This document shows, piece by piece, positions 56,406-64,000 of a stretch of DNA of 64,000 nucleotides (position 1 is the first letter of the stretch; each line of letters opens with the position of its first letter). The position numbers were made by a program, and so were the translations under genes. The stretch is taken from sequence record LR535910.1. One strand, 5' to 3'. The notes beneath the pieces are model-generated. The model made no database searches. It had not been told where the DNA came from and was given only the letters and a program-made list of their open reading frames with translations.

Positions 56406-57026
56406 ATGAGTCGTCGCAAAAAGAAACCCGCTTATAACCCACGTAAAGACGCACGCGATTTCGTCAAAGCGATGATGCAGTCTGTGTTGAAAAAACAAGC
56501 TGTGTTTATCGAAAGTACCGAATTCCTGTCGGGCAAAATTGATCGGGAGCGTGAAGTAACTGAAGCCATTGCGCACGAAGAGCTGAAAGCTTTCACGTTG
56601 AAAGCGCTGGATGAAGCACAAGCAGCATTCCTCGGCATGTGCCAACAAGGCAAAGAGCTGTTCGGTAAACTGATTGTTGAGGCAGATGCTAAGGCTGTGC
56701 CGGTGTTTGACATGCTGAACGATAGCAGCAAAACCTGGAAAGAGGTTAAAGACCAGTTCCATGTCGATCACACCGAGCTGTCTTTGATTGACCAGCGGGC
56801 GAATATGCTCGCGATGGATATCCAGGGCACCAGTATCGAAATCTTCTCTACGTATAACGCGAAAGTGAAGTTCGTGAAGCAGGCGCTGAATAACGGGCAT
56901 ACCGTGGAACAAGCCGAAGTTCTGTTGGCCGAAGCTCTGGCTAATAATTCGAAAGAACTCCCTAAAAACGCCATCGTCGATCACAACGACGTTGTAGTAG
57001 AAACCGAGGAAGCGGCACATGTCTGA
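56406..57026 (+). CDS. Hypothetical coiled-coil protein with a basic N-terminus
   Basis: AAGGA SD; starts MSRRKKKPAYNPRK. Confidence 0.75.
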   Translation: MSRRKKKPAYNPRKDARDFVKAMMQSVLKKQAVFIESTEFLSGKIDREREVTEAIAHEELKAFTLKALDEAQAAFLGMCQQGKELFGKLIVEADAKAVPVFDMLNDSSKTWKEVKDQFHVDHTELSLIDQRANMLAMDIQGTSIEIFSTYNAKVKFVKQALNNGHTVEQAEVLLAEALANNSKELPKNAIVDHNDVVVETEEAAHV

Positions 57027-58986
57027 GATCCAAGATCAGCGTCCGGGTAATGCCCGTCGCCCTAATCCCGATCAGCCAGCCCCTGTGGCGGCTGCTACCC
57101 AACAAGAGATGATTCTTCCGACCGTGCCTGATGACGCGAATCCGGATGCAATCATCATGGCTATTAAACAAGCCAACCCCGATTTTTCTTTTGCCCGTGC
57201 AGAAGAAGTTTATCACCAGCATTATCATCAGCCGGAGCCTAAGCTCGAGCGTCCGACGTTTGTAGAAGAAGCTTTGCCCGAACCGGCACCGGTACAGCCT
57301 GTAGCCCAGACCTTCTCTGAACAGGTGCACGAGCATATTCATCACACCCCAGAACCGGTGGTAGAGAAAGCGCCTGCGGTAGAACCTGCTCCGCAGCCAA
57401 AAGCTCCGGAAGCGGTTGCACCGGCACAGCCGGCTGTAAAAGAAATGGAAGACGCAGCACCGAAGGTTCCGGAACAACAACAGGTCCGTGAGATTGACTT
57501 CGGTAATACCCATTTAGCTGAAACCGCCGAAATGGGTGAAGATGAAGCTGATCGTATCCTGACACAGTCGAAGATGTTGATTGGTCTGAAACAAGACCCT
57601 AACATCATTGCAGACTCCCTGCAAAAGTTCCTCGGTAATATTAAACGTTCACCGAAAGACGGTCGGCTGCTGTTCGAAAGTCCTGAACAACAACAGGTCT
57701 ACGACGACATCTATCGTGCTTTGAACATGACACCGCCACGTCTACAGGACGGCGTACCGGCATTCGCTGGTGCACTGGACCGTGGTGACACCGCTTGGGA
57801 ACAGCGTGTGATGTTGCCGGACGGTAAGGCATCTGGTGCTATTGCACCGCGTGACAATATGCACACTGGCGCGCTGGCTGCTTTGCGTCGTGTACGTAAG
57901 TCGGGTATTCCGAACATGGTTTGGCTGCCGGCCACAGGTATCTACGTGGGCTTCCGCGCACCACATGAACGCGACCTTTGTGACTTCGACATGCGTCTAA
58001 CACTGGAAACTGCGACCATCGGTATGCAGACCTACGGATTGATGCTGTCGTCGTCTTCTGGCGTGTACATGCGTCACATGGTTGAATTCGCACTTCAGTT
58101 TGTTACCGAAGCAACCATCGATTGCGCGGGTAACGATCTGCGTACGGTGCTGTTGGATACCATTGATCTGGCTGACTACTGGCTGGTTATTCTGGGTCCG
58201 TTGCAGGCGAAGTGGCCGTCTGGTATTCCATGGACGCTGATGTGTGGCGAAGACGGTTGCACTCAGCAGGAAGATGTGAAGCTGAATATCGCACGTTGTA
58301 TCCGTTTCGGTTCCGGTCTGTTTAGCGACCTGCAGAAACAACTGTGGGCACGTCAGCGCGGTACTGAGCGTCCAGTGATTTCTATTGCTGAACAGCGCGA
58401 ATATATCGCGGCGCATCAGGTCGACCCATCCTCGGTATTTGAATACCACGACGTGCGTGTTGAATTTGGCCGTTCTACCCTGGGTAGCTTCTTTGACTCC
58501 ACCGAGAAGTGGATTGAAGACGTTAACGCGTCAACTACGGCAGCGCTGTCTGAATTTGCTACCGAGCGTGAACGTGAATCCCATATGCGTTTAACTGCGG
58601 AAGCCCGTCGCTTAACGCGCTACGCTCACATGGTGAAATCTATCACTGTTAATGAGCAACGTGAAGTAAACGGTGAAATGCAGGTTATCCCACAAACTGA
58701 AACCGACACAGCGAAAATCGTTGAGATGCTGGAAGAGCTGTCTTCCGACCGTATCTACGTTGGTCAGTTTGAAAACGCGATTGCTGAATACAACGAACGT
58801 ACACGTTTAGCGGTATTCGGTTACATGGGTAAACGCTGCCCGGCGTGCGGTAAAACACACGGCGAGAAAGACGGTCTGTATCGCGGTATTGTTACCATCT
58901 CACCGGACAGGGTTTTTTTCGTGCTCTCTCGAGTGGTGTCCGAGATTCAGAAATTCTTGCTGGATCAATACGCCGATATTGGCTAG
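57019..58986 (+). CDS. Candidate tail/baseplate-hub assembly chaperone (gpG / T4 gp26-like), 655 aa
   Basis: Pro/Glu-rich N-terminal region; C-GEDG-C and CPACG Zn-knuckle motifs; slippery site near the 3' end. Confidence 0.55.
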   Translation: MSEIQDQRPGNARRPNPDQPAPVAAATQQEMILPTVPDDANPDAIIMAIKQANPDFSFARAEEVYHQHYHQPEPKLERPTFVEEALPEPAPVQPVAQTFSEQVHEHIHHTPEPVVEKAPAVEPAPQPKAPEAVAPAQPAVKEMEDAAPKVPEQQQVREIDFGNTHLAETAEMGEDEADRILTQSKMLIGLKQDPNIIADSLQKFLGNIKRSPKDGRLLFESPEQQQVYDDIYRALNMTPPRLQDGVPAFAGALDRGDTAWEQRVMLPDGKASGAIAPRDNMHTGALAALRRVRKSGIPNMVWLPATGIYVGFRAPHERDLCDFDMRLTLETATIGMQTYGLMLSSSSGVYMRHMVEFALQFVTEATIDCAGNDLRTVLLDTIDLADYWLVILGPLQAKWPSGIPWTLMCGEDGCTQQEDVKLNIARCIRFGSGLFSDLQKQLWARQRGTERPVISIAEQREYIAAHQVDPSSVFEYHDVRVEFGRSTLGSFFDSTEKWIEDVNASTTAALSEFATERERESHMRLTAEARRLTRYAHMVKSITVNEQREVNGEMQVIPQTETDTAKIVEMLEELSSDRIYVGQFENAIAEYNERTRLAVFGYMGKRCPACGKTHGEKDGLYRGIVTISPDRVFFVLSRVVSEIQKFLLDQYADIG

Positions 58987-59402
58987 ACCAGGAAGACGTT
59001 CCGTCCGAGCAAATCATTACAACGCTCAAGATGGATACCACCTCTCTCTTCAAGCAGCGTAGCACACGTCCTATTACGTATCAGGAAGCCCATAACGAGC
59101 TTCTGGAAGCGTATGACCGTACACTGGCTCTTAATACCGGCGACCATCAGGTAGGGTTGTCGGATTTTGAAAACCCGGTATACGGTAGTCTTTACGATAT
59201 CTGGTACGCCACTTACTTACGTGAAGAGGTCGGTGAAAACTACCGGATGTCGATAGACGAGTTCCTCGACCGTCCCCGCTGGCAGATACTGCTGATGCTC
59301 GACAATATCCGTCGTCGCAAAGCAATTATCGCCAAAGCCGGCGAACAGGTGGCAGGTGAACGTGCGCTAAAGGAGCTGGAGAAAGATCTGACGGGACATT
59401 AA
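58917..59402 (+). CDS. -1 frame extension (gpGT-like); includes the 59031-59402 ORF
   Basis: The -1 frame is open from 58854 to the stop at 59400-59402; ATG 59031 has no SD; SIDEFLDRPRWQILLML resembles chaperone T-segments. Confidence 0.6.
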   Translation, partial: FRALSSGVRDSEILAGSIRRYWLDQEDVPSEQIITTLKMDTTSLFKQRSTRPITYQEAHNELLEAYDRTLALNTGDHQVGLSDFENPVYGSLYDIWYATYLREEVGENYRMSIDEFLDRPRWQILLMLDNIRRRKAIIAKAGEQVAGERALKELEKDLTGH

Positions 59403-59410
59403 TAGAAATT

Positions 59411-59440
59411 CGGGGCTTCGGCCCCGTTTTCTTTTTTTAT
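59411..59440 (+). terminator. Intrinsic terminator
   Basis: CGGGGC-TTCG-GCCCCG followed by a T-tract. Confidence 0.85.
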
Positions 59441-59481
59441 TCGCCTTGGTATGAATGCCCTTTTCACTATGGAACAGAGCC

Positions 59482-60339
59482 ATGATTGATATTTATACCG
59501 ACTATGCGGCTGTATTGACAGTCAACCGTCACGAAGGTCGTGCAGCACCGATGCTAGATTTAGTGACGCTCGGTATGGATTACGGTTACGATGTGGCGTT
59601 ATCCGATGTTTATAGCAACCCGTTGTCTGACCCTGCGGACGAAACTGTTCGTCTGGAATCCATTATCGTGAAGGTAGCGGTTGGGTTAGGCAACCGCCTC
59701 GGTATCGGACTTAATCCACAAATCGTCTTCCAGAAACCGAAAGAAACCGTACGTATCCTTCACGGTGTGTTGGAAGCCTTCGAAGAGTTCGAAGACAGTG
59801 ATGCCCTTTACGGGATTGTCTCCTCTGGTGAGACACCAGAGTATATCCTGGAGAACATGTGTCGTTATGTTTACGGTGACGAAAACCTGCACTTCGAAGA
59901 CCTGATTACTGTTGTCAGCCCACGCGTGCTTACCGTGATGGAAAACTTCTTAGCGGCAGAGTCGTTGGAAAGCCAGAAAAGAAATGGCGATGATGAGCGC
60001 CAAGAGCGTATCGTCACTTACTTGCGGTTGTTCCCTGAGAACCCGTCAGCGTTTGTCTTTATGAATCTGCCTGCTGAACCAGACTTAACAGTGGTGCAAC
60101 AATCGTTAGAATTTCGCGTAGAAGACATTAGCGAAATTGATTTGCTGACGATGTATGCGGTAGGTTTATCGATTATTCCTCATGCGGAGTTTGACGGGGC
60201 TTACGGTGACTTAGAAAAGAACCTTGCCTTGTTGAACGTCGACAACGTCCCGCCTGGAGAAATCTTGCGGAAAGGATTGGAAGCGTTGAAAGTCATATAC
60301 GCTAGTGGGGACGCGGAGGTAGATGATGAACAAGATTGA
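59482..60339 (+). CDS. Virion/head protein (phiKZ gp79-like)
   Basis: 285 aa; GTATG at 59449-59453 upstream; precedes vRNAP beta'-C. Confidence 0.65.
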   Translation: MIDIYTDYAAVLTVNRHEGRAAPMLDLVTLGMDYGYDVALSDVYSNPLSDPADETVRLESIIVKVAVGLGNRLGIGLNPQIVFQKPKETVRILHGVLEAFEEFEDSDALYGIVSSGETPEYILENMCRYVYGDENLHFEDLITVVSPRVLTVMENFLAAESLESQKRNGDDERQERIVTYLRLFPENPSAFVFMNLPAEPDLTVVQQSLEFRVEDISEIDLLTMYAVGLSIIPHAEFDGAYGDLEKNLALLNVDNVPPGEILRKGLEALKVIYASGDAEVDDEQD

Positions 60340-62186: not shown

Positions 62187-62790
62187 AGAACCCGCAGATG
62201 TACTCCATAGGCTCTGTCACTACTTCCCCTTGCTTACGTAAGAACGTAGACAGGACAGTGTCTTTGTCCGGTAAGCAGAAGAAGTCTGTCGCTATTTCCA
62301 TGGCATTAACTCGCCCAGCAGTTAAGTTGACGCCCGTGCGACGTCGAATCTCTTCACTAACCCCATTGATGGACAGTAGTTCGATGAGTGTGGTCTCACG
62401 AGACTGGTTCATCATGTTTGTGGCCGAAGGGTAGGCCTGGGTTAAGTCCGCATCCGCAGTTTGTCCACGGAACGCAGAGTAATATTCGTCAATCTCCTCC
62501 AGAATGTTATTCAGACCGTTCTCAGCATTCATACATGCTGTCAGGGTAACAATCCAACCGTCTGTACCGATAACCTCTTCATCGTAATCGTTACGCATTG
62601 CAGACCCTACGGAACCGATGACGTATCCTTTGTCATACAGATAGTAGGTAAAGGCCACACAGATACGTTTTGGTAGCGACGGGAAGATATCGTACATCGA
62701 GAAACCTGCCAGAATGGATATTGCCGAAGACAAGTCGTTCGTCTTCTTATCCAGCAACACGATTAACAAGTTATCCATCATGTTGTATAC
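62185..62790 (-). CDS. C-terminal fragment of the second DNA polymerase subunit (exonuclease + motif A; phiKZ gp82-like), cut by the assembly junction
   Basis: TADADLTQAYPS is family-B motif A (DxxSLYPS); its 5' part is replaced by adapter sequence. Confidence 0.75.
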   Translation of the reverse strand, partial: VYNMMDNLLIVLLDKKTNDLSSAISILAGFSMYDIFPSLPKRICVAFTYYLYDKGYVIGSVGSAMRNDYDEEVIGTDGWIVTLTACMNAENGLNNILEEIDEYYSAFRGQTADADLTQAYPSATNMMNQSRETTLIELLSINGVSEEIRRRTGVNLTAGRVNAMEIATDFFCLPDKDTVLSTFLRKQGEVVTEPMEYICGF

Positions 62791-62865
62791 CTGTTCTCTT
62801 ATACACATCTCCGAGCCCACGAGACTAAGGCGAATATCGTATGCCGTCTTCTGCTTGAAAAAAAA
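62791..62865 (+). other. Illumina Nextera adapter read-through (artefact)
   Basis: CTGT(T)CTCTTATACACATCT-CCGAGCCCACGAGAC-TAAGGCGA (N701 index)-AT(A)TCGTATGCCGTCTTCTGCTTG-AAAAAAAA. Confidence 0.98.
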
Positions 62866-64000
62866 TATGAAGACACAGGTTCTTTCAATAAAATTCTCGA
62901 CTCATTCGGAATCGGAGGGTCAGCTGGATCAGAAGACTTTGCTACAGCAGCAGCCATTGCTGACAAAGACCTAGCCGGTGTTTTCACTTCAATACCGTAT
63001 GATTCCAAATTACCGGTAAGAATAATCATGGTAACACGGGATGCACGGCCTTTTGTTTGTTGATACCACAATGAATCACGACCAGCTTTATATGCTTTTT
63101 CCCAATCTCCGGCTAACATAGCAGTTAACATTGTGTTAAATTTAGCTACACCGCCAACACCCATCTGAAATGCCATATTTTCTAATGCCATTTGACGAGA
63201 ACGATTAACCGCTTGCCAAACTGGGCCAACTTTAGAATGTGATTTAATGTCACGTTGCATATCAGCTAAATCACGTTCAAATAAAGTTACCGCTTCTTCC
63301 ATTGTAATAGAACCTGGATTTCCGGTAATTTCACGACCAACTTGTTTTGATAAAACTTTATTAATTTGAGTCATATCACGAACTGGCTGCTTCATGATAA
63401 GATGACCAATGCCAATTGTCGGATATCCTTCAGTATCCCAATAAACTTTTAGTCTTAATCCTTCATCACGGCGAAGCATTTCAGCCATTGACATATTTGG
63501 ATTATCATCAGTTGGAATTTCTGATAGCGGTCTATCATCAGGATTTATCGCAGTATCTAGATTACTATCTTGGATAATATTAGAAGACGAATCATATCCT
63601 ACTTCTCCGCCTTGGTTTAATACGTTAGTATCATTTCCTAGACGTCTAGGATACTGTCCAGTCGGGTCAGAAAATCCTTCGAGTCTATTAGGCTTTTCGC
63701 GAACTATTCCGCCATATGTGCCAAGGACAATTCCGTTAGTTTTCCATTTGTCTAAAAAATGACCATAAACTCTAGTTCCTTCTACCGGACCAGTAACGGA
63801 GCCTCCAATTCCAGACATTGCTGCAGAAGTTATAGGTTGAATAACTGACATCCATGGTAATTTATCAGTTGGAATACCCATTACATCACCTTGTGCTCTT
63901 TGAGGTGGATGCAAACCAACCACACGAACACGAACACGACCTAATTTTAATGGGTCCATTCTATCTTCAACAACACCAACAAACCAATTAAGGTTATTAC
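62866..64000 (-). CDS. gp5: T4-like baseplate hub and tail lysozyme gp5 (partial, contaminant)
   Basis: (S)NNLNWFVGVVEDRMDPLKLGRVRVR OB domain and RRDEGLRLKVYWDTEGYPTIGIGHL T4-lysozyme motif, near-identical to T4 gp5 as recalled; visibly more AT-rich than the rest. Confidence 0.95.

Follow-up and report, generated by a model that had tools for sequence, protein, structure and literature searches.

Recoded genes in phages and bacteria

A known programmed -1 ribosomal frameshift (PRF) in phages is that of lambda G/GT, which is reportedly conserved among the tail assembly chaperones (TACs) of long-tailed phages (Xu et al. 2004), with P2 E/E+E' and the Mu equivalents as further examples. In these systems, a -1 shift on a slippery run (G_GGA_AAG in lambda) near the 3' end of an upstream ORF of about 100–150 codons, located between the tail tube and tape-measure genes, yields a short product and a C-terminally extended product in a fixed ratio. 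No RNA stimulator is known to be needed, neither product is known from the virion, and the arrangement persists across very divergent phages despite low sequence identity. In the E. coli dnaX gene (tau/gamma), a -1 shift on the homopolymeric heptamer A_AAA_AAG gives two products from one gene; the heptamer is accompanied by a strong upstream SD and a downstream hairpin, and the shifted product is the shorter one. T4 gp26 and gp51 (Pfam PF12322, T4_baseplate) are baseplate-hub (assembly) proteins for which no frameshift extension is known; gp51 acts catalytically, and gp26 is not known to have been seen in T4 baseplate maps.

Organization of the locus

We analyzed a 64,000-nt stretch (the window) of record LR535910.1 from Salmonella phage SPFM13, an SPN3US-like member of Seoulvirus. 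The original prediction proposed that two neighbouring ORFs in this window are joined by a -1 PRF and encode a G/GT-type tail assembly chaperone pair. The sequence observation proved to be correct, whereas its interpretation is only partly supported: a programmed frameshift is strongly favoured by comparative evidence, but membership of the G/GT family is not supported.

ORF1 (57019–58986, + strand; 655 aa) corresponds to SPN3US gp39, phiKZ gp077 and Chimalliviridae core gene cg18 (phrog_8054), one of the 68 core genes of this family and without an assigned function. It consists of an N-terminal region rich in Pro, Glu and Gln (57019–57717), which is variable and contains many gaps among relatives, such that distant relatives match only from about profile position 265 onward, and of a conserved domain (57718–58983; roughly 420 aa) predicted to be globular, with four nearly invariant Cys residues (CxxxxC and CxxC). 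ORF2 (59031–59402, +; 123 aa), annotated as SPN3US gp40 (phrog_7580), lies in the -1 frame relative to ORF1. The 0-frame codons AGG GTT TTT TTC place a perfect X_XXY_YYZ heptamer, T_TTT_TTC, at 58914–58920, within a T7 run at 58913–58919. The last -1-frame stop is TAA at 58851–58853, and the -1 frame is therefore open from 58854 to 59402 (182 codons), overlapping the 3' end of ORF1 by 133 nt (58854–58986). By codon count, the two products would be of 655 and 794 aa (634 + 160), as originally predicted. The CPAC motif and the SIDEFLDRPRW segment highlighted in that prediction are present, but the inference that CxxC motifs and this segment fit a chaperone pair has no basis in any search.

Such an arrangement is unlikely to arise by chance. 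The window contains 33 in-register X_XXY_YYZ heptamers within open stretches of at least 200 codons, and the -1 frame following them remains open for a median of 8 codons (90th percentile, 31), compared to 162 codons here. The only longer case lies in T4-like DNA beyond a chimeric record join near 62791 and was rejected as not being part of the jumbo-phage sequence.

Conservation of the -1 frame among relatives

A search for related loci with the single protein returned only SPN3US itself, and we therefore used annotated phage records and encoding contigs. The 32 lineages examined, ranging from Seoulvirus to phiKZ, a Vibrio phage, a Bacillus phage and metagenomic contigs, comprise 16 SPN3US-supergroup genomes, PhiPA3, PA7, 201phi2-1, Noxifer, AH06, RAY, RSL2, VP4B, Bacillus phage AgentSmith and 7 metagenomic lineages. 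In all 32, ORF1 is followed by a -1-frame ORF of about 155–176 codons, which is open back into the 3' end of ORF1, and a run of 5–8 U is present in the overlap, with a Phe codon UUY preceded by U. The homologous extension measures 154–176 codons in every complete lineage. In relatives, the -1 frame opens 0–189 nt before the U run: -1-frame stops reach right up to the 7-mer in two lineages (0 nt) and are located 12–18 nt before it in five others, whereas the ORF1 stop lies 24–66 nt after it in the 30 lineages where this was measured. Together, these boundaries pin the shift to the Phe codons.

All database records except two annotate two genes, and ORF2 could in principle be translated on its own from the ATG at 59031 or by termination-reinitiation at the ORF1 stop, given that both ORFs belong to one operon. 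However, we consider this very unlikely. The ATG has no SD-like motif, neither an SD nor the positions of start codons are conserved among the relatives, and AgentSmith, AH06 and PA7 have no start codon or SD within 260 nt. Furthermore, the codon-position profile switches from 0-frame wobble upstream to -1-frame wobble immediately after the ORF1 stop, before any ATG. In the 'bridge' between the ORF1 stop and the annotated ORF2 start (58987–59030), the least conserved position is position 3 of the -1 frame (identity 0.65/0.78/0.36). The bridge and the overlap evolve as coding sequence in the -1 frame and align as protein across 50%-identity relatives. A tblastn search with the 182-aa -1-frame stretch matched Erwinia phages at 53–69% identity over residues 3/8–181 in one piece spanning two annotated genes. 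In the dual-coding stretch (58921–58986), which holds the 0-frame C-terminal tail of the short product and the first 22 codons of the -1-frame extension, conservation is raised at all three codon positions and both frames are conserved as protein.

A homopolymer sequencing or assembly error, or a decaying gene, appears even less likely, although the site is a T7 run. The same split with the same run is found in 16 SPN3US-group genomes from different laboratories, and the split is found in every distant lineage. The original prediction would have been undermined by relatives with a longer run and a single ORF, but relatives do not show this. The two records with a continuous ORF are of poor sequence: SEGD1, annotated with one 795-aa ORF, has the same run and differs by one net single-base length change elsewhere in the overlap zone, which removes residues invariant in 22 homologues, whereas the metagenomic fragment P0060 has 11 single-base gaps against its nearest relative in 1.6 kb. 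The ORF1 family has 1096 clusters at E<=1e-3, and none of the 150 listed best representatives leaves room for a fused extension after the family match. Moreover, of 177 family proteins, 161 end 7–44 residues after the F[FL] motif and none is a credible fusion.

The slippery site and its surroundings

The heptamer is invariant in 16 of 16 SPN3US-group genomes and always lies 63 nt before the ORF1 stop. In the codon-level comparison, xxT TTT TTC is fixed in 15 of 15 genomes, including synonymous sites, compared to an identity of 0.36–0.63 at upstream wobble positions; four other invariant Phe columns mix TTT and TTC, and T is used at only 32% of four-fold third positions. Phe-Phe is nearly invariant in 81 diverse family members, but it is also part of a conserved C-terminal helix in the predicted structure, and thus some of its conservation is at the protein level. 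Across all lineages, the motif is N_TTT_TTN in 30 and xTT_TTT in 2. Seven FF-type lineages have G or A rather than U before UUU_UUY, and two LF/VF lineages carry the run one phase earlier. The strict tandem-slippage heptamer is therefore not universal, and a single-tRNA slip on U_UUY must be invoked in these cases.

The same fused product would result if an RNA polymerase, of the phage or the host, added one U on the T run. This possibility is consistent with the homopolymeric nature of the site (T7 here, T8 in AH06, RAY and RSL2) and with the lack of a detected RNA stimulator, and the slippage behaviour of the phage's own RNA polymerases is not known. However, 10 of 32 lineages have only U5 or U6, shorter than the runs described to give productive transcriptional slippage, and the register of the run relative to the 0 frame is conserved, which matters for tRNA re-pairing but not for a polymerase. 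We thus regard transcriptional slippage as unlikely.

The original prediction also included a hairpin (TCTCG 58927–58931/CGAGA 58941–58945) starting 6 nt after the heptamer. These segments can pair, but the 5-bp stem with a 9-nt loop is weak (-4.5 kcal/mol; z = -0.52, not significant), is kept in 13 of 15 genomes and broken in 2, and shows no covariation; it is therefore not supported as a conserved stimulator. RNAalifold, single-sequence folding and shuffling revealed no conserved downstream structure (mean folding z of +0.15 in 30 lineages), an anti-SD duplex scan found an SD-like element in only 2 of 32 lineages, and an Rfam scan gave no relevant hit. An unexplained CCGGAC element (58903–58908), which is not SD-like, is invariant including wobble bases in 15 of 15 SPN3US-group genomes.

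Collectively, these data strongly support the view that ORF1 and ORF2 are one gene decoded in two ways. We propose that most ribosomes read the 0 frame to the stop at 58984–58986 and produce the 655-aa protein, whereas a fraction slip back by one base on U_UUU_UUC, where both Phe-tRNAs can re-pair, and continue in the -1 frame for 160 codons to 59399 (58920–59402 with the stop), producing a protein of about 794 aa. In the longer product, the last 21 residues, part of a predicted C-terminal helix, would be replaced by a predicted, mostly helical extension of about 160 aa. The anatomy of the locus, its conservation, the coding nature of the bridge in the -1 frame and the absence of conserved starts follow directly from the sequences, whereas ribosomal slippage itself, production of the transframe protein, the efficiency of the shift and the function of the products are inferred. 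As the U run is the only conserved cis element, we infer an unstimulated, probably low and fixed shift rate, as in lambda G/GT, although the efficiency may be very low. By contrast to dnaX, no stimulators were found here and the shifted product would be the longer one. Literature searches for a described frameshift in SPN3US, phiKZ, Chimalliviridae or jumbo phages found none, in agreement with the original prediction. The downstream ORF is annotated inconsistently in every genome, with starts 11–215 nt after the ORF1 stop, and was not found among the listed core genes. Recognition of a single recoded gene corrects the annotation of hundreds of jumbo-phage genomes and adds a conserved domain of about 160 aa to the core proteome. 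It also provides an unusually clean example of a -1 frameshift site kept over very deep divergence with the U run as the only conserved cis element, which is useful for frameshift-prediction tools.

Predicted structure and possible function

Searches with both parts and their family alignments against Pfam, PHROGs and PDB gave no informative hit; a match of the single sequence to 5dmp (E 0.006) disappeared when the profile was used. No TAC family of Pfam or PHROGs matched either part, nor did Pfam TAC families match 81 and 24 relatives, and the PHROG families to which the two parts belong have unknown function. Furthermore, ORF1 is 4–6 times the size of G-type proteins, with only the 160-aa extension being of fitting length, the slip motif is U_UUU_UUC (more generally U_UUY), and the neighbouring genes encode helicase, gp38, gp41, RNAP subunits and DNA polymerase rather than tail tube and tape-measure proteins. 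Thus, despite the similar inferred frameshift logic, no sequence or family relationship to lambda G/GT was detected, and true membership of this family, with binding to the tape measure and tube protein, is unlikely.

The AF2 model of the ORF1 domain is confident (pLDDT 92.7, pTM 0.91), but has no fold match in the PDB (best E 0.32). However, a Foldseek search against BFVD returned at least 7 entries annotated as baseplate hub subunit or hub assembly protein of the T4 gp26/gp51 type (E 3e-5 to 1e-2, target-normalised TM 0.31–0.55, rmsd 7.5–19), all of which are predicted models, whereas an entry named 'tail assembly chaperone' appeared only at E 0.26. The ORF1 domain and the gp26/gp51-type proteins share a C-terminal CPxCGKTH-like motif, but the T4-type proteins are of 208–285 aa, compared to a domain of about 420 aa plus a variable N-terminal region of about 230 aa in ORF1. 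Sequence profiles did not support membership of PF12322: the Pfam model hit one of 81 members at E 0.0076, which is below significance, hhalign gave a probability of 10–15% over 12 columns, on the CPxCG motif alone, and phmmer gave E 0.01–0.05 in a 168-protein set. The link to gp26/gp51 thus rests on predicted structures only. The AF2 model of the extension is mostly helical and of low confidence (pLDDT 58).

A non-virion location is indicated only through homologues. The Churi homologue is listed among non-structural proteins expressed at 15 min (PMC11849849), and the protein is absent from the fully assigned Goslar hub and inner baseplate (bioRxiv 10.64898/2026.04.21.720040). By analogy with G/GT, we infer that the two forms of this probably zinc-binding, four-Cys protein may act together as a fixed-ratio assembly factor, although detection at 15 min after infection is early for a tail-assembly factor. 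An inferred fixed ratio of two products, the apparent absence from the virion and the predicted hub-assembly-like fold offer a concrete handle on the function of cg18. Tentatively, one could envisage an ancient, family-wide recoding event, whereby a core gene of nucleus-forming jumbo phages and their Bacillus and Vibrio relatives has always been expressed as two proteins through an unstimulated -1 slip on a short U run. The pair would then be a fixed-ratio baseplate-hub or tail assembly chaperone built on a gp26/gp51-like scaffold, an independent invention of the G/GT logic in a different protein family, and would supply the frameshifted assembly chaperone so far missing from phiKZ-like phages. 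This scenario is not excluded but remains less likely than not.

Flanking genes and transcription signals

The upstream partner gene (56406–57026, +), corresponding to SPN3US gp38 and the phiKZ gp078 family (phrog_8045), overlaps the start of ORF1 by 8 nt and precedes ORF1 in all annotated relatives retrieved. Downstream of the extension, a hairpin followed by a T tract (59411–59434, +) resembles an intrinsic terminator and would close the transcription unit, whereas no promoter-like site lies between ORF1 and ORF2.

Genomic context and anatomy of the overlap

The region 56900–59500 is 100% identical to ten Salmonella phage SPFM records and 96–97% identical to SPN3US (Seoulvirus). By contrast, the SPFM records LR535901, LR535903–LR535908, LR535911–LR535913 and LR535917 (SPFM1, 5–10, 12, 14, 15 and 20) match it only as 5–40 short pieces and yield fragmented or garbled protein calls (P0026, P0029–P0031, P0036, P0038 and P0040 in our protein set); they appear to be error-rich assemblies and should not be used for frame analysis. 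ORF1 (57019–58986, 655 aa) corresponds to SPN3US_0039 (ACQ60_gp227) and ORF2 (59031–59402, 123 aa) to SPN3US_0040. Through the notes in the PhiPA3 and 201phi2-1 records, ORF1 can be equated with phiKZ gp077, 201phi2-1 gp136 and PhiPA3 gp074, and in the supplement of Prichard et al. 2023 it is Chimalliviridae core gene cg18, listed as ‘hypothetical protein’. The gene is always flanked by a gp078-family gene (56406–57026), whose end overlaps the ORF1 start, and by a gp079-family gene (59482–60339; core gene cg19), both of unknown function (phrog_8045 and phrog_7807, respectively).

Everything observed in the original prediction is present in the sequence at the stated coordinates. The codons AGG GTT TTT TTC place a slippery heptamer at 58914–58920, inside a T7 run, the preceding −1-frame stop is TAA at 58851–58853, and the −1 frame is open from 58854 to 59402. 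A 5-bp inverted repeat begins 6 nt after the heptamer, and the ATG of ORF2 lacks an SD. Codon counts give predicted products of 655 aa and 794 aa. To assess whether such an arrangement could be incidental, we scanned the long open frames of the window and found 33 in-register heptamers, after which the −1 frame stays open for a median of 8 codons, whereas here it stays open for 162. The scan also flagged a spurious ‘heptamer plus long −1 ORF’, which does not represent a gene break, as it lies in T4-like DNA beyond a record junction. Namely, the SPN3US-like sequence stops near 62790/62791, inside the DNA polymerase gene (minus strand, from 62185), and the rest (62791–64000), up to the end of record LR535910.1 (SPFM13; the last 1.5 kb of the window maps to the very end of this record, so that window position 64000 equals record position 241405), is 95–99% identical to T4-like coliphage gp5/gp53 DNA, with Gp5_OB and lysozyme domains, indicating a chimeric record end or contaminant join.

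Conservation of the −1-frame arrangement

We examined 32 lineages, namely, 16 genomes of the SPN3US supergroup (Seoulvirus, Erskinevirus, Machinavirus, Wellingtonvirus, Derbicusvirus and four metagenomic contigs), PhiPA3, PA7 (Phikzvirus), 201phi2-1, Noxifer, AH06 and RAY (Agricanvirus), RSL2, Vibrio phage VP4B and Bacillus phage AgentSmith, five metagenomic lineages picked through homology to ORF2, and two lineages picked because their ORF1 lacks the Phe-Phe motif. In all 32, the downstream ORF is in the −1 frame and is open back into ORF1, and a run of 5–8 U lies in the overlap, placed so that a Phe codon UUY is preceded by U. In the 16 SPN3US-group genomes the heptamer is T_TTT_TTC, always 63 nt before the ORF1 stop. 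In lineages where Phe-Phe is replaced by Leu-Phe or Val-Phe (loci L035, at about 2640, and L036, at about 1890), the U5 run is kept one codon phase earlier (xTT TTT), and in L036 it is directly preceded by a perfect AGGAGG. The −1-frame extension, counted from the site, spans 154–176 codons in all but one lineage, the exception being a contig that ends after 54 codons, and is recognisably homologous across the 25 lineages aligned. Across the family, the nearest upstream −1-frame stop lies 0–189 nt before the run, directly abutting the 7-mer in two metagenomic lineages, whereas the ORF1 stop lies 24–66 nt after the run in the 30 lineages where this was measured. Together, these limits pin the shift to the Phe codons.

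The bridge between ORF1 and the annotated ORF2 evolves as −1-frame coding sequence. In a tblastn search, the single-frame 182-aa translation of 58854–59399 aligned to Erwinia phages at 53–69% identity over residues 3/8–181, in one piece lying over two annotated genes. In a gap-free block of 15 genomes, the least conserved codon position upstream of the site is 0-frame position 3 (identity 0.36–0.63), whereas directly after the ORF1 stop, well before the first ATG in any of these genomes, it is −1-frame position 3 (0.65/0.78/0.36). Between the site and the stop, all three positions are raised in conservation, as expected for dual coding. No conserved start codon or SD was found in the −1 frame: annotated starts fall 11–215 nt after the ORF1 stop, and three lineages have no ATG, GTG or TTG within 260 nt of the site.

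The site itself also appears to be under selection. In 15 genomes, the three codons at the site are xxT TTT TTC without exception, whereas four other invariant Phe columns of the same gene use both TTT and TTC. The codon before the site changes amino acid (Val or Leu) but keeps its final T, although T accounts for only 32% of four-fold third positions. Phe-Phe is nearly invariant in 81 members at 19–84% identity.

Recoding versus gene disruption

No credible natural fused form was found among relatives. A profile search of 1.84 billion representatives yielded 1096 clusters (E ≤ 1e-3), and in the 150 best hits the protein ends shortly after the family match, leaving no room for a fused extension. 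Similarly, of 177 family proteins collected, 161 end 7–44 residues after the F[FL] motif. Two records do read through. SEGD1 (KU726251.1; locus L003, 1120–3507), the only isolate record with a continuous ORF, annotated as 795 aa, has the same U run but differs from its 96%-identical relatives by one net single-base length change in a short divergent stretch within the overlap zone; that stretch removes residues invariant in 22 homologues and is thus probably a record error. The second, P0060, comes from a 1.6-kb metagenomic contig with 11 single-base gaps against its nearest relative. Both look like poor sequence, and we therefore regard the gene as recoded rather than broken.

The U run is the only conserved cis element. 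The hairpin proposed in the original prediction is present in 13 of 15 genomes and broken in 2, with no compensatory change, and is worth −4.5 kcal/mol. Folding of the 50 nt after the site is no better than that of shuffled sequences in any of 30 lineages (mean z +0.15; z −0.52 for the site in the window). An SD-like element precedes the run in only 2 of 32 lineages, and an Rfam scan returned nothing relevant. An unexplained CCGGAC (58903–58908), 6–11 nt upstream of the heptamer, is invariant, wobble bases included, in 15 of 15 SPN3US-group genomes, although only the 0 frame is read there; it is not SD-like and no covarying partner was found.

One extra U added to the mRNA by the polymerase would give the same product as a −1 shift by the ribosome. 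However, 10 of 32 lineages have only U5–6 and the register of the run is conserved, arguing against transcriptional slippage. On present evidence, ribosomal slippage is clearly more likely, although sequence comparison does not exclude the alternative. The anatomy of the locus, its conservation and the coding of the bridge in the −1 frame are established by the comparison, whereas slippage by the ribosome, production of the longer protein and the function discussed below are inferred. We found no paper describing a frameshift in this gene or in SPN3US, phiKZ or Chimalliviridae generally, including a 2025 review of nucleus-forming phages, and none of the records retrieved annotates a joined CDS. 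Although the mechanism is of a known kind, its occurrence in this core gene family appears to be new.

Predicted structure and possible function

Neither part matches Pfam, a PHROG of known function or PDB sequences. The first roughly 230 residues of ORF1 are variable and rich in Pro, Glu and Gln, whereas residues 234–655 give a confident AF2 model (pLDDT 92.7, pTM 0.91), with four nearly invariant Cys and a C-terminal helix that contains the Phe-Phe. The shifted product would therefore replace part of that helix. The extension folds with low confidence and is predicted to be mostly helical. A Foldseek search with the ORF1 model found no PDB match (best E 0.32). In BFVD, after the family itself, it recovered at least seven proteins annotated ‘baseplate hub assembly protein’, ‘hub subunit’ or ‘hub assembly chaperone’ at E 3e-5 to 1e-2, a resemblance between predicted models only. 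Both gp26 and gp51 of a T4-like phage belong to PF12322, but profile and phmmer comparisons with them recovered only the C-terminal CPxCG region at non-significant scores.

Published data on homologues point to a protein outside the virion. The Churi homologue is listed among non-structural proteins detected at 15 min after infection (PMC11849849), and the Goslar virion structure assigns all hub and inner-baseplate density without its cg18 homologue. Furthermore, the 201phi2-1 record flags the neighbouring gp138, the homologue of the gp079-family gene, as found by mass spectrometry, but not gp135 or gp136. Taken together, a non-virion assembly factor of the gp26/gp51 type is the best functional guess, at moderate confidence. 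The interpretation offered in the original prediction, a G/GT-type tail assembly chaperone pair produced by −1 frameshifting, is thus only partly supported: the frameshift is upheld by the comparative evidence, but membership of the G/GT family is not supported, given the absence of a family match, the wrong size and the wrong genomic context. With regard to the wider neighbourhood of the gene, relatives (loci L024, 1–587, and L031, 4988–5477) carry LAGLIDADG- or Hom_end-type (intein or homing endonuclease) Pfam hits in long neighbouring genes with products of 916 and 851 aa.
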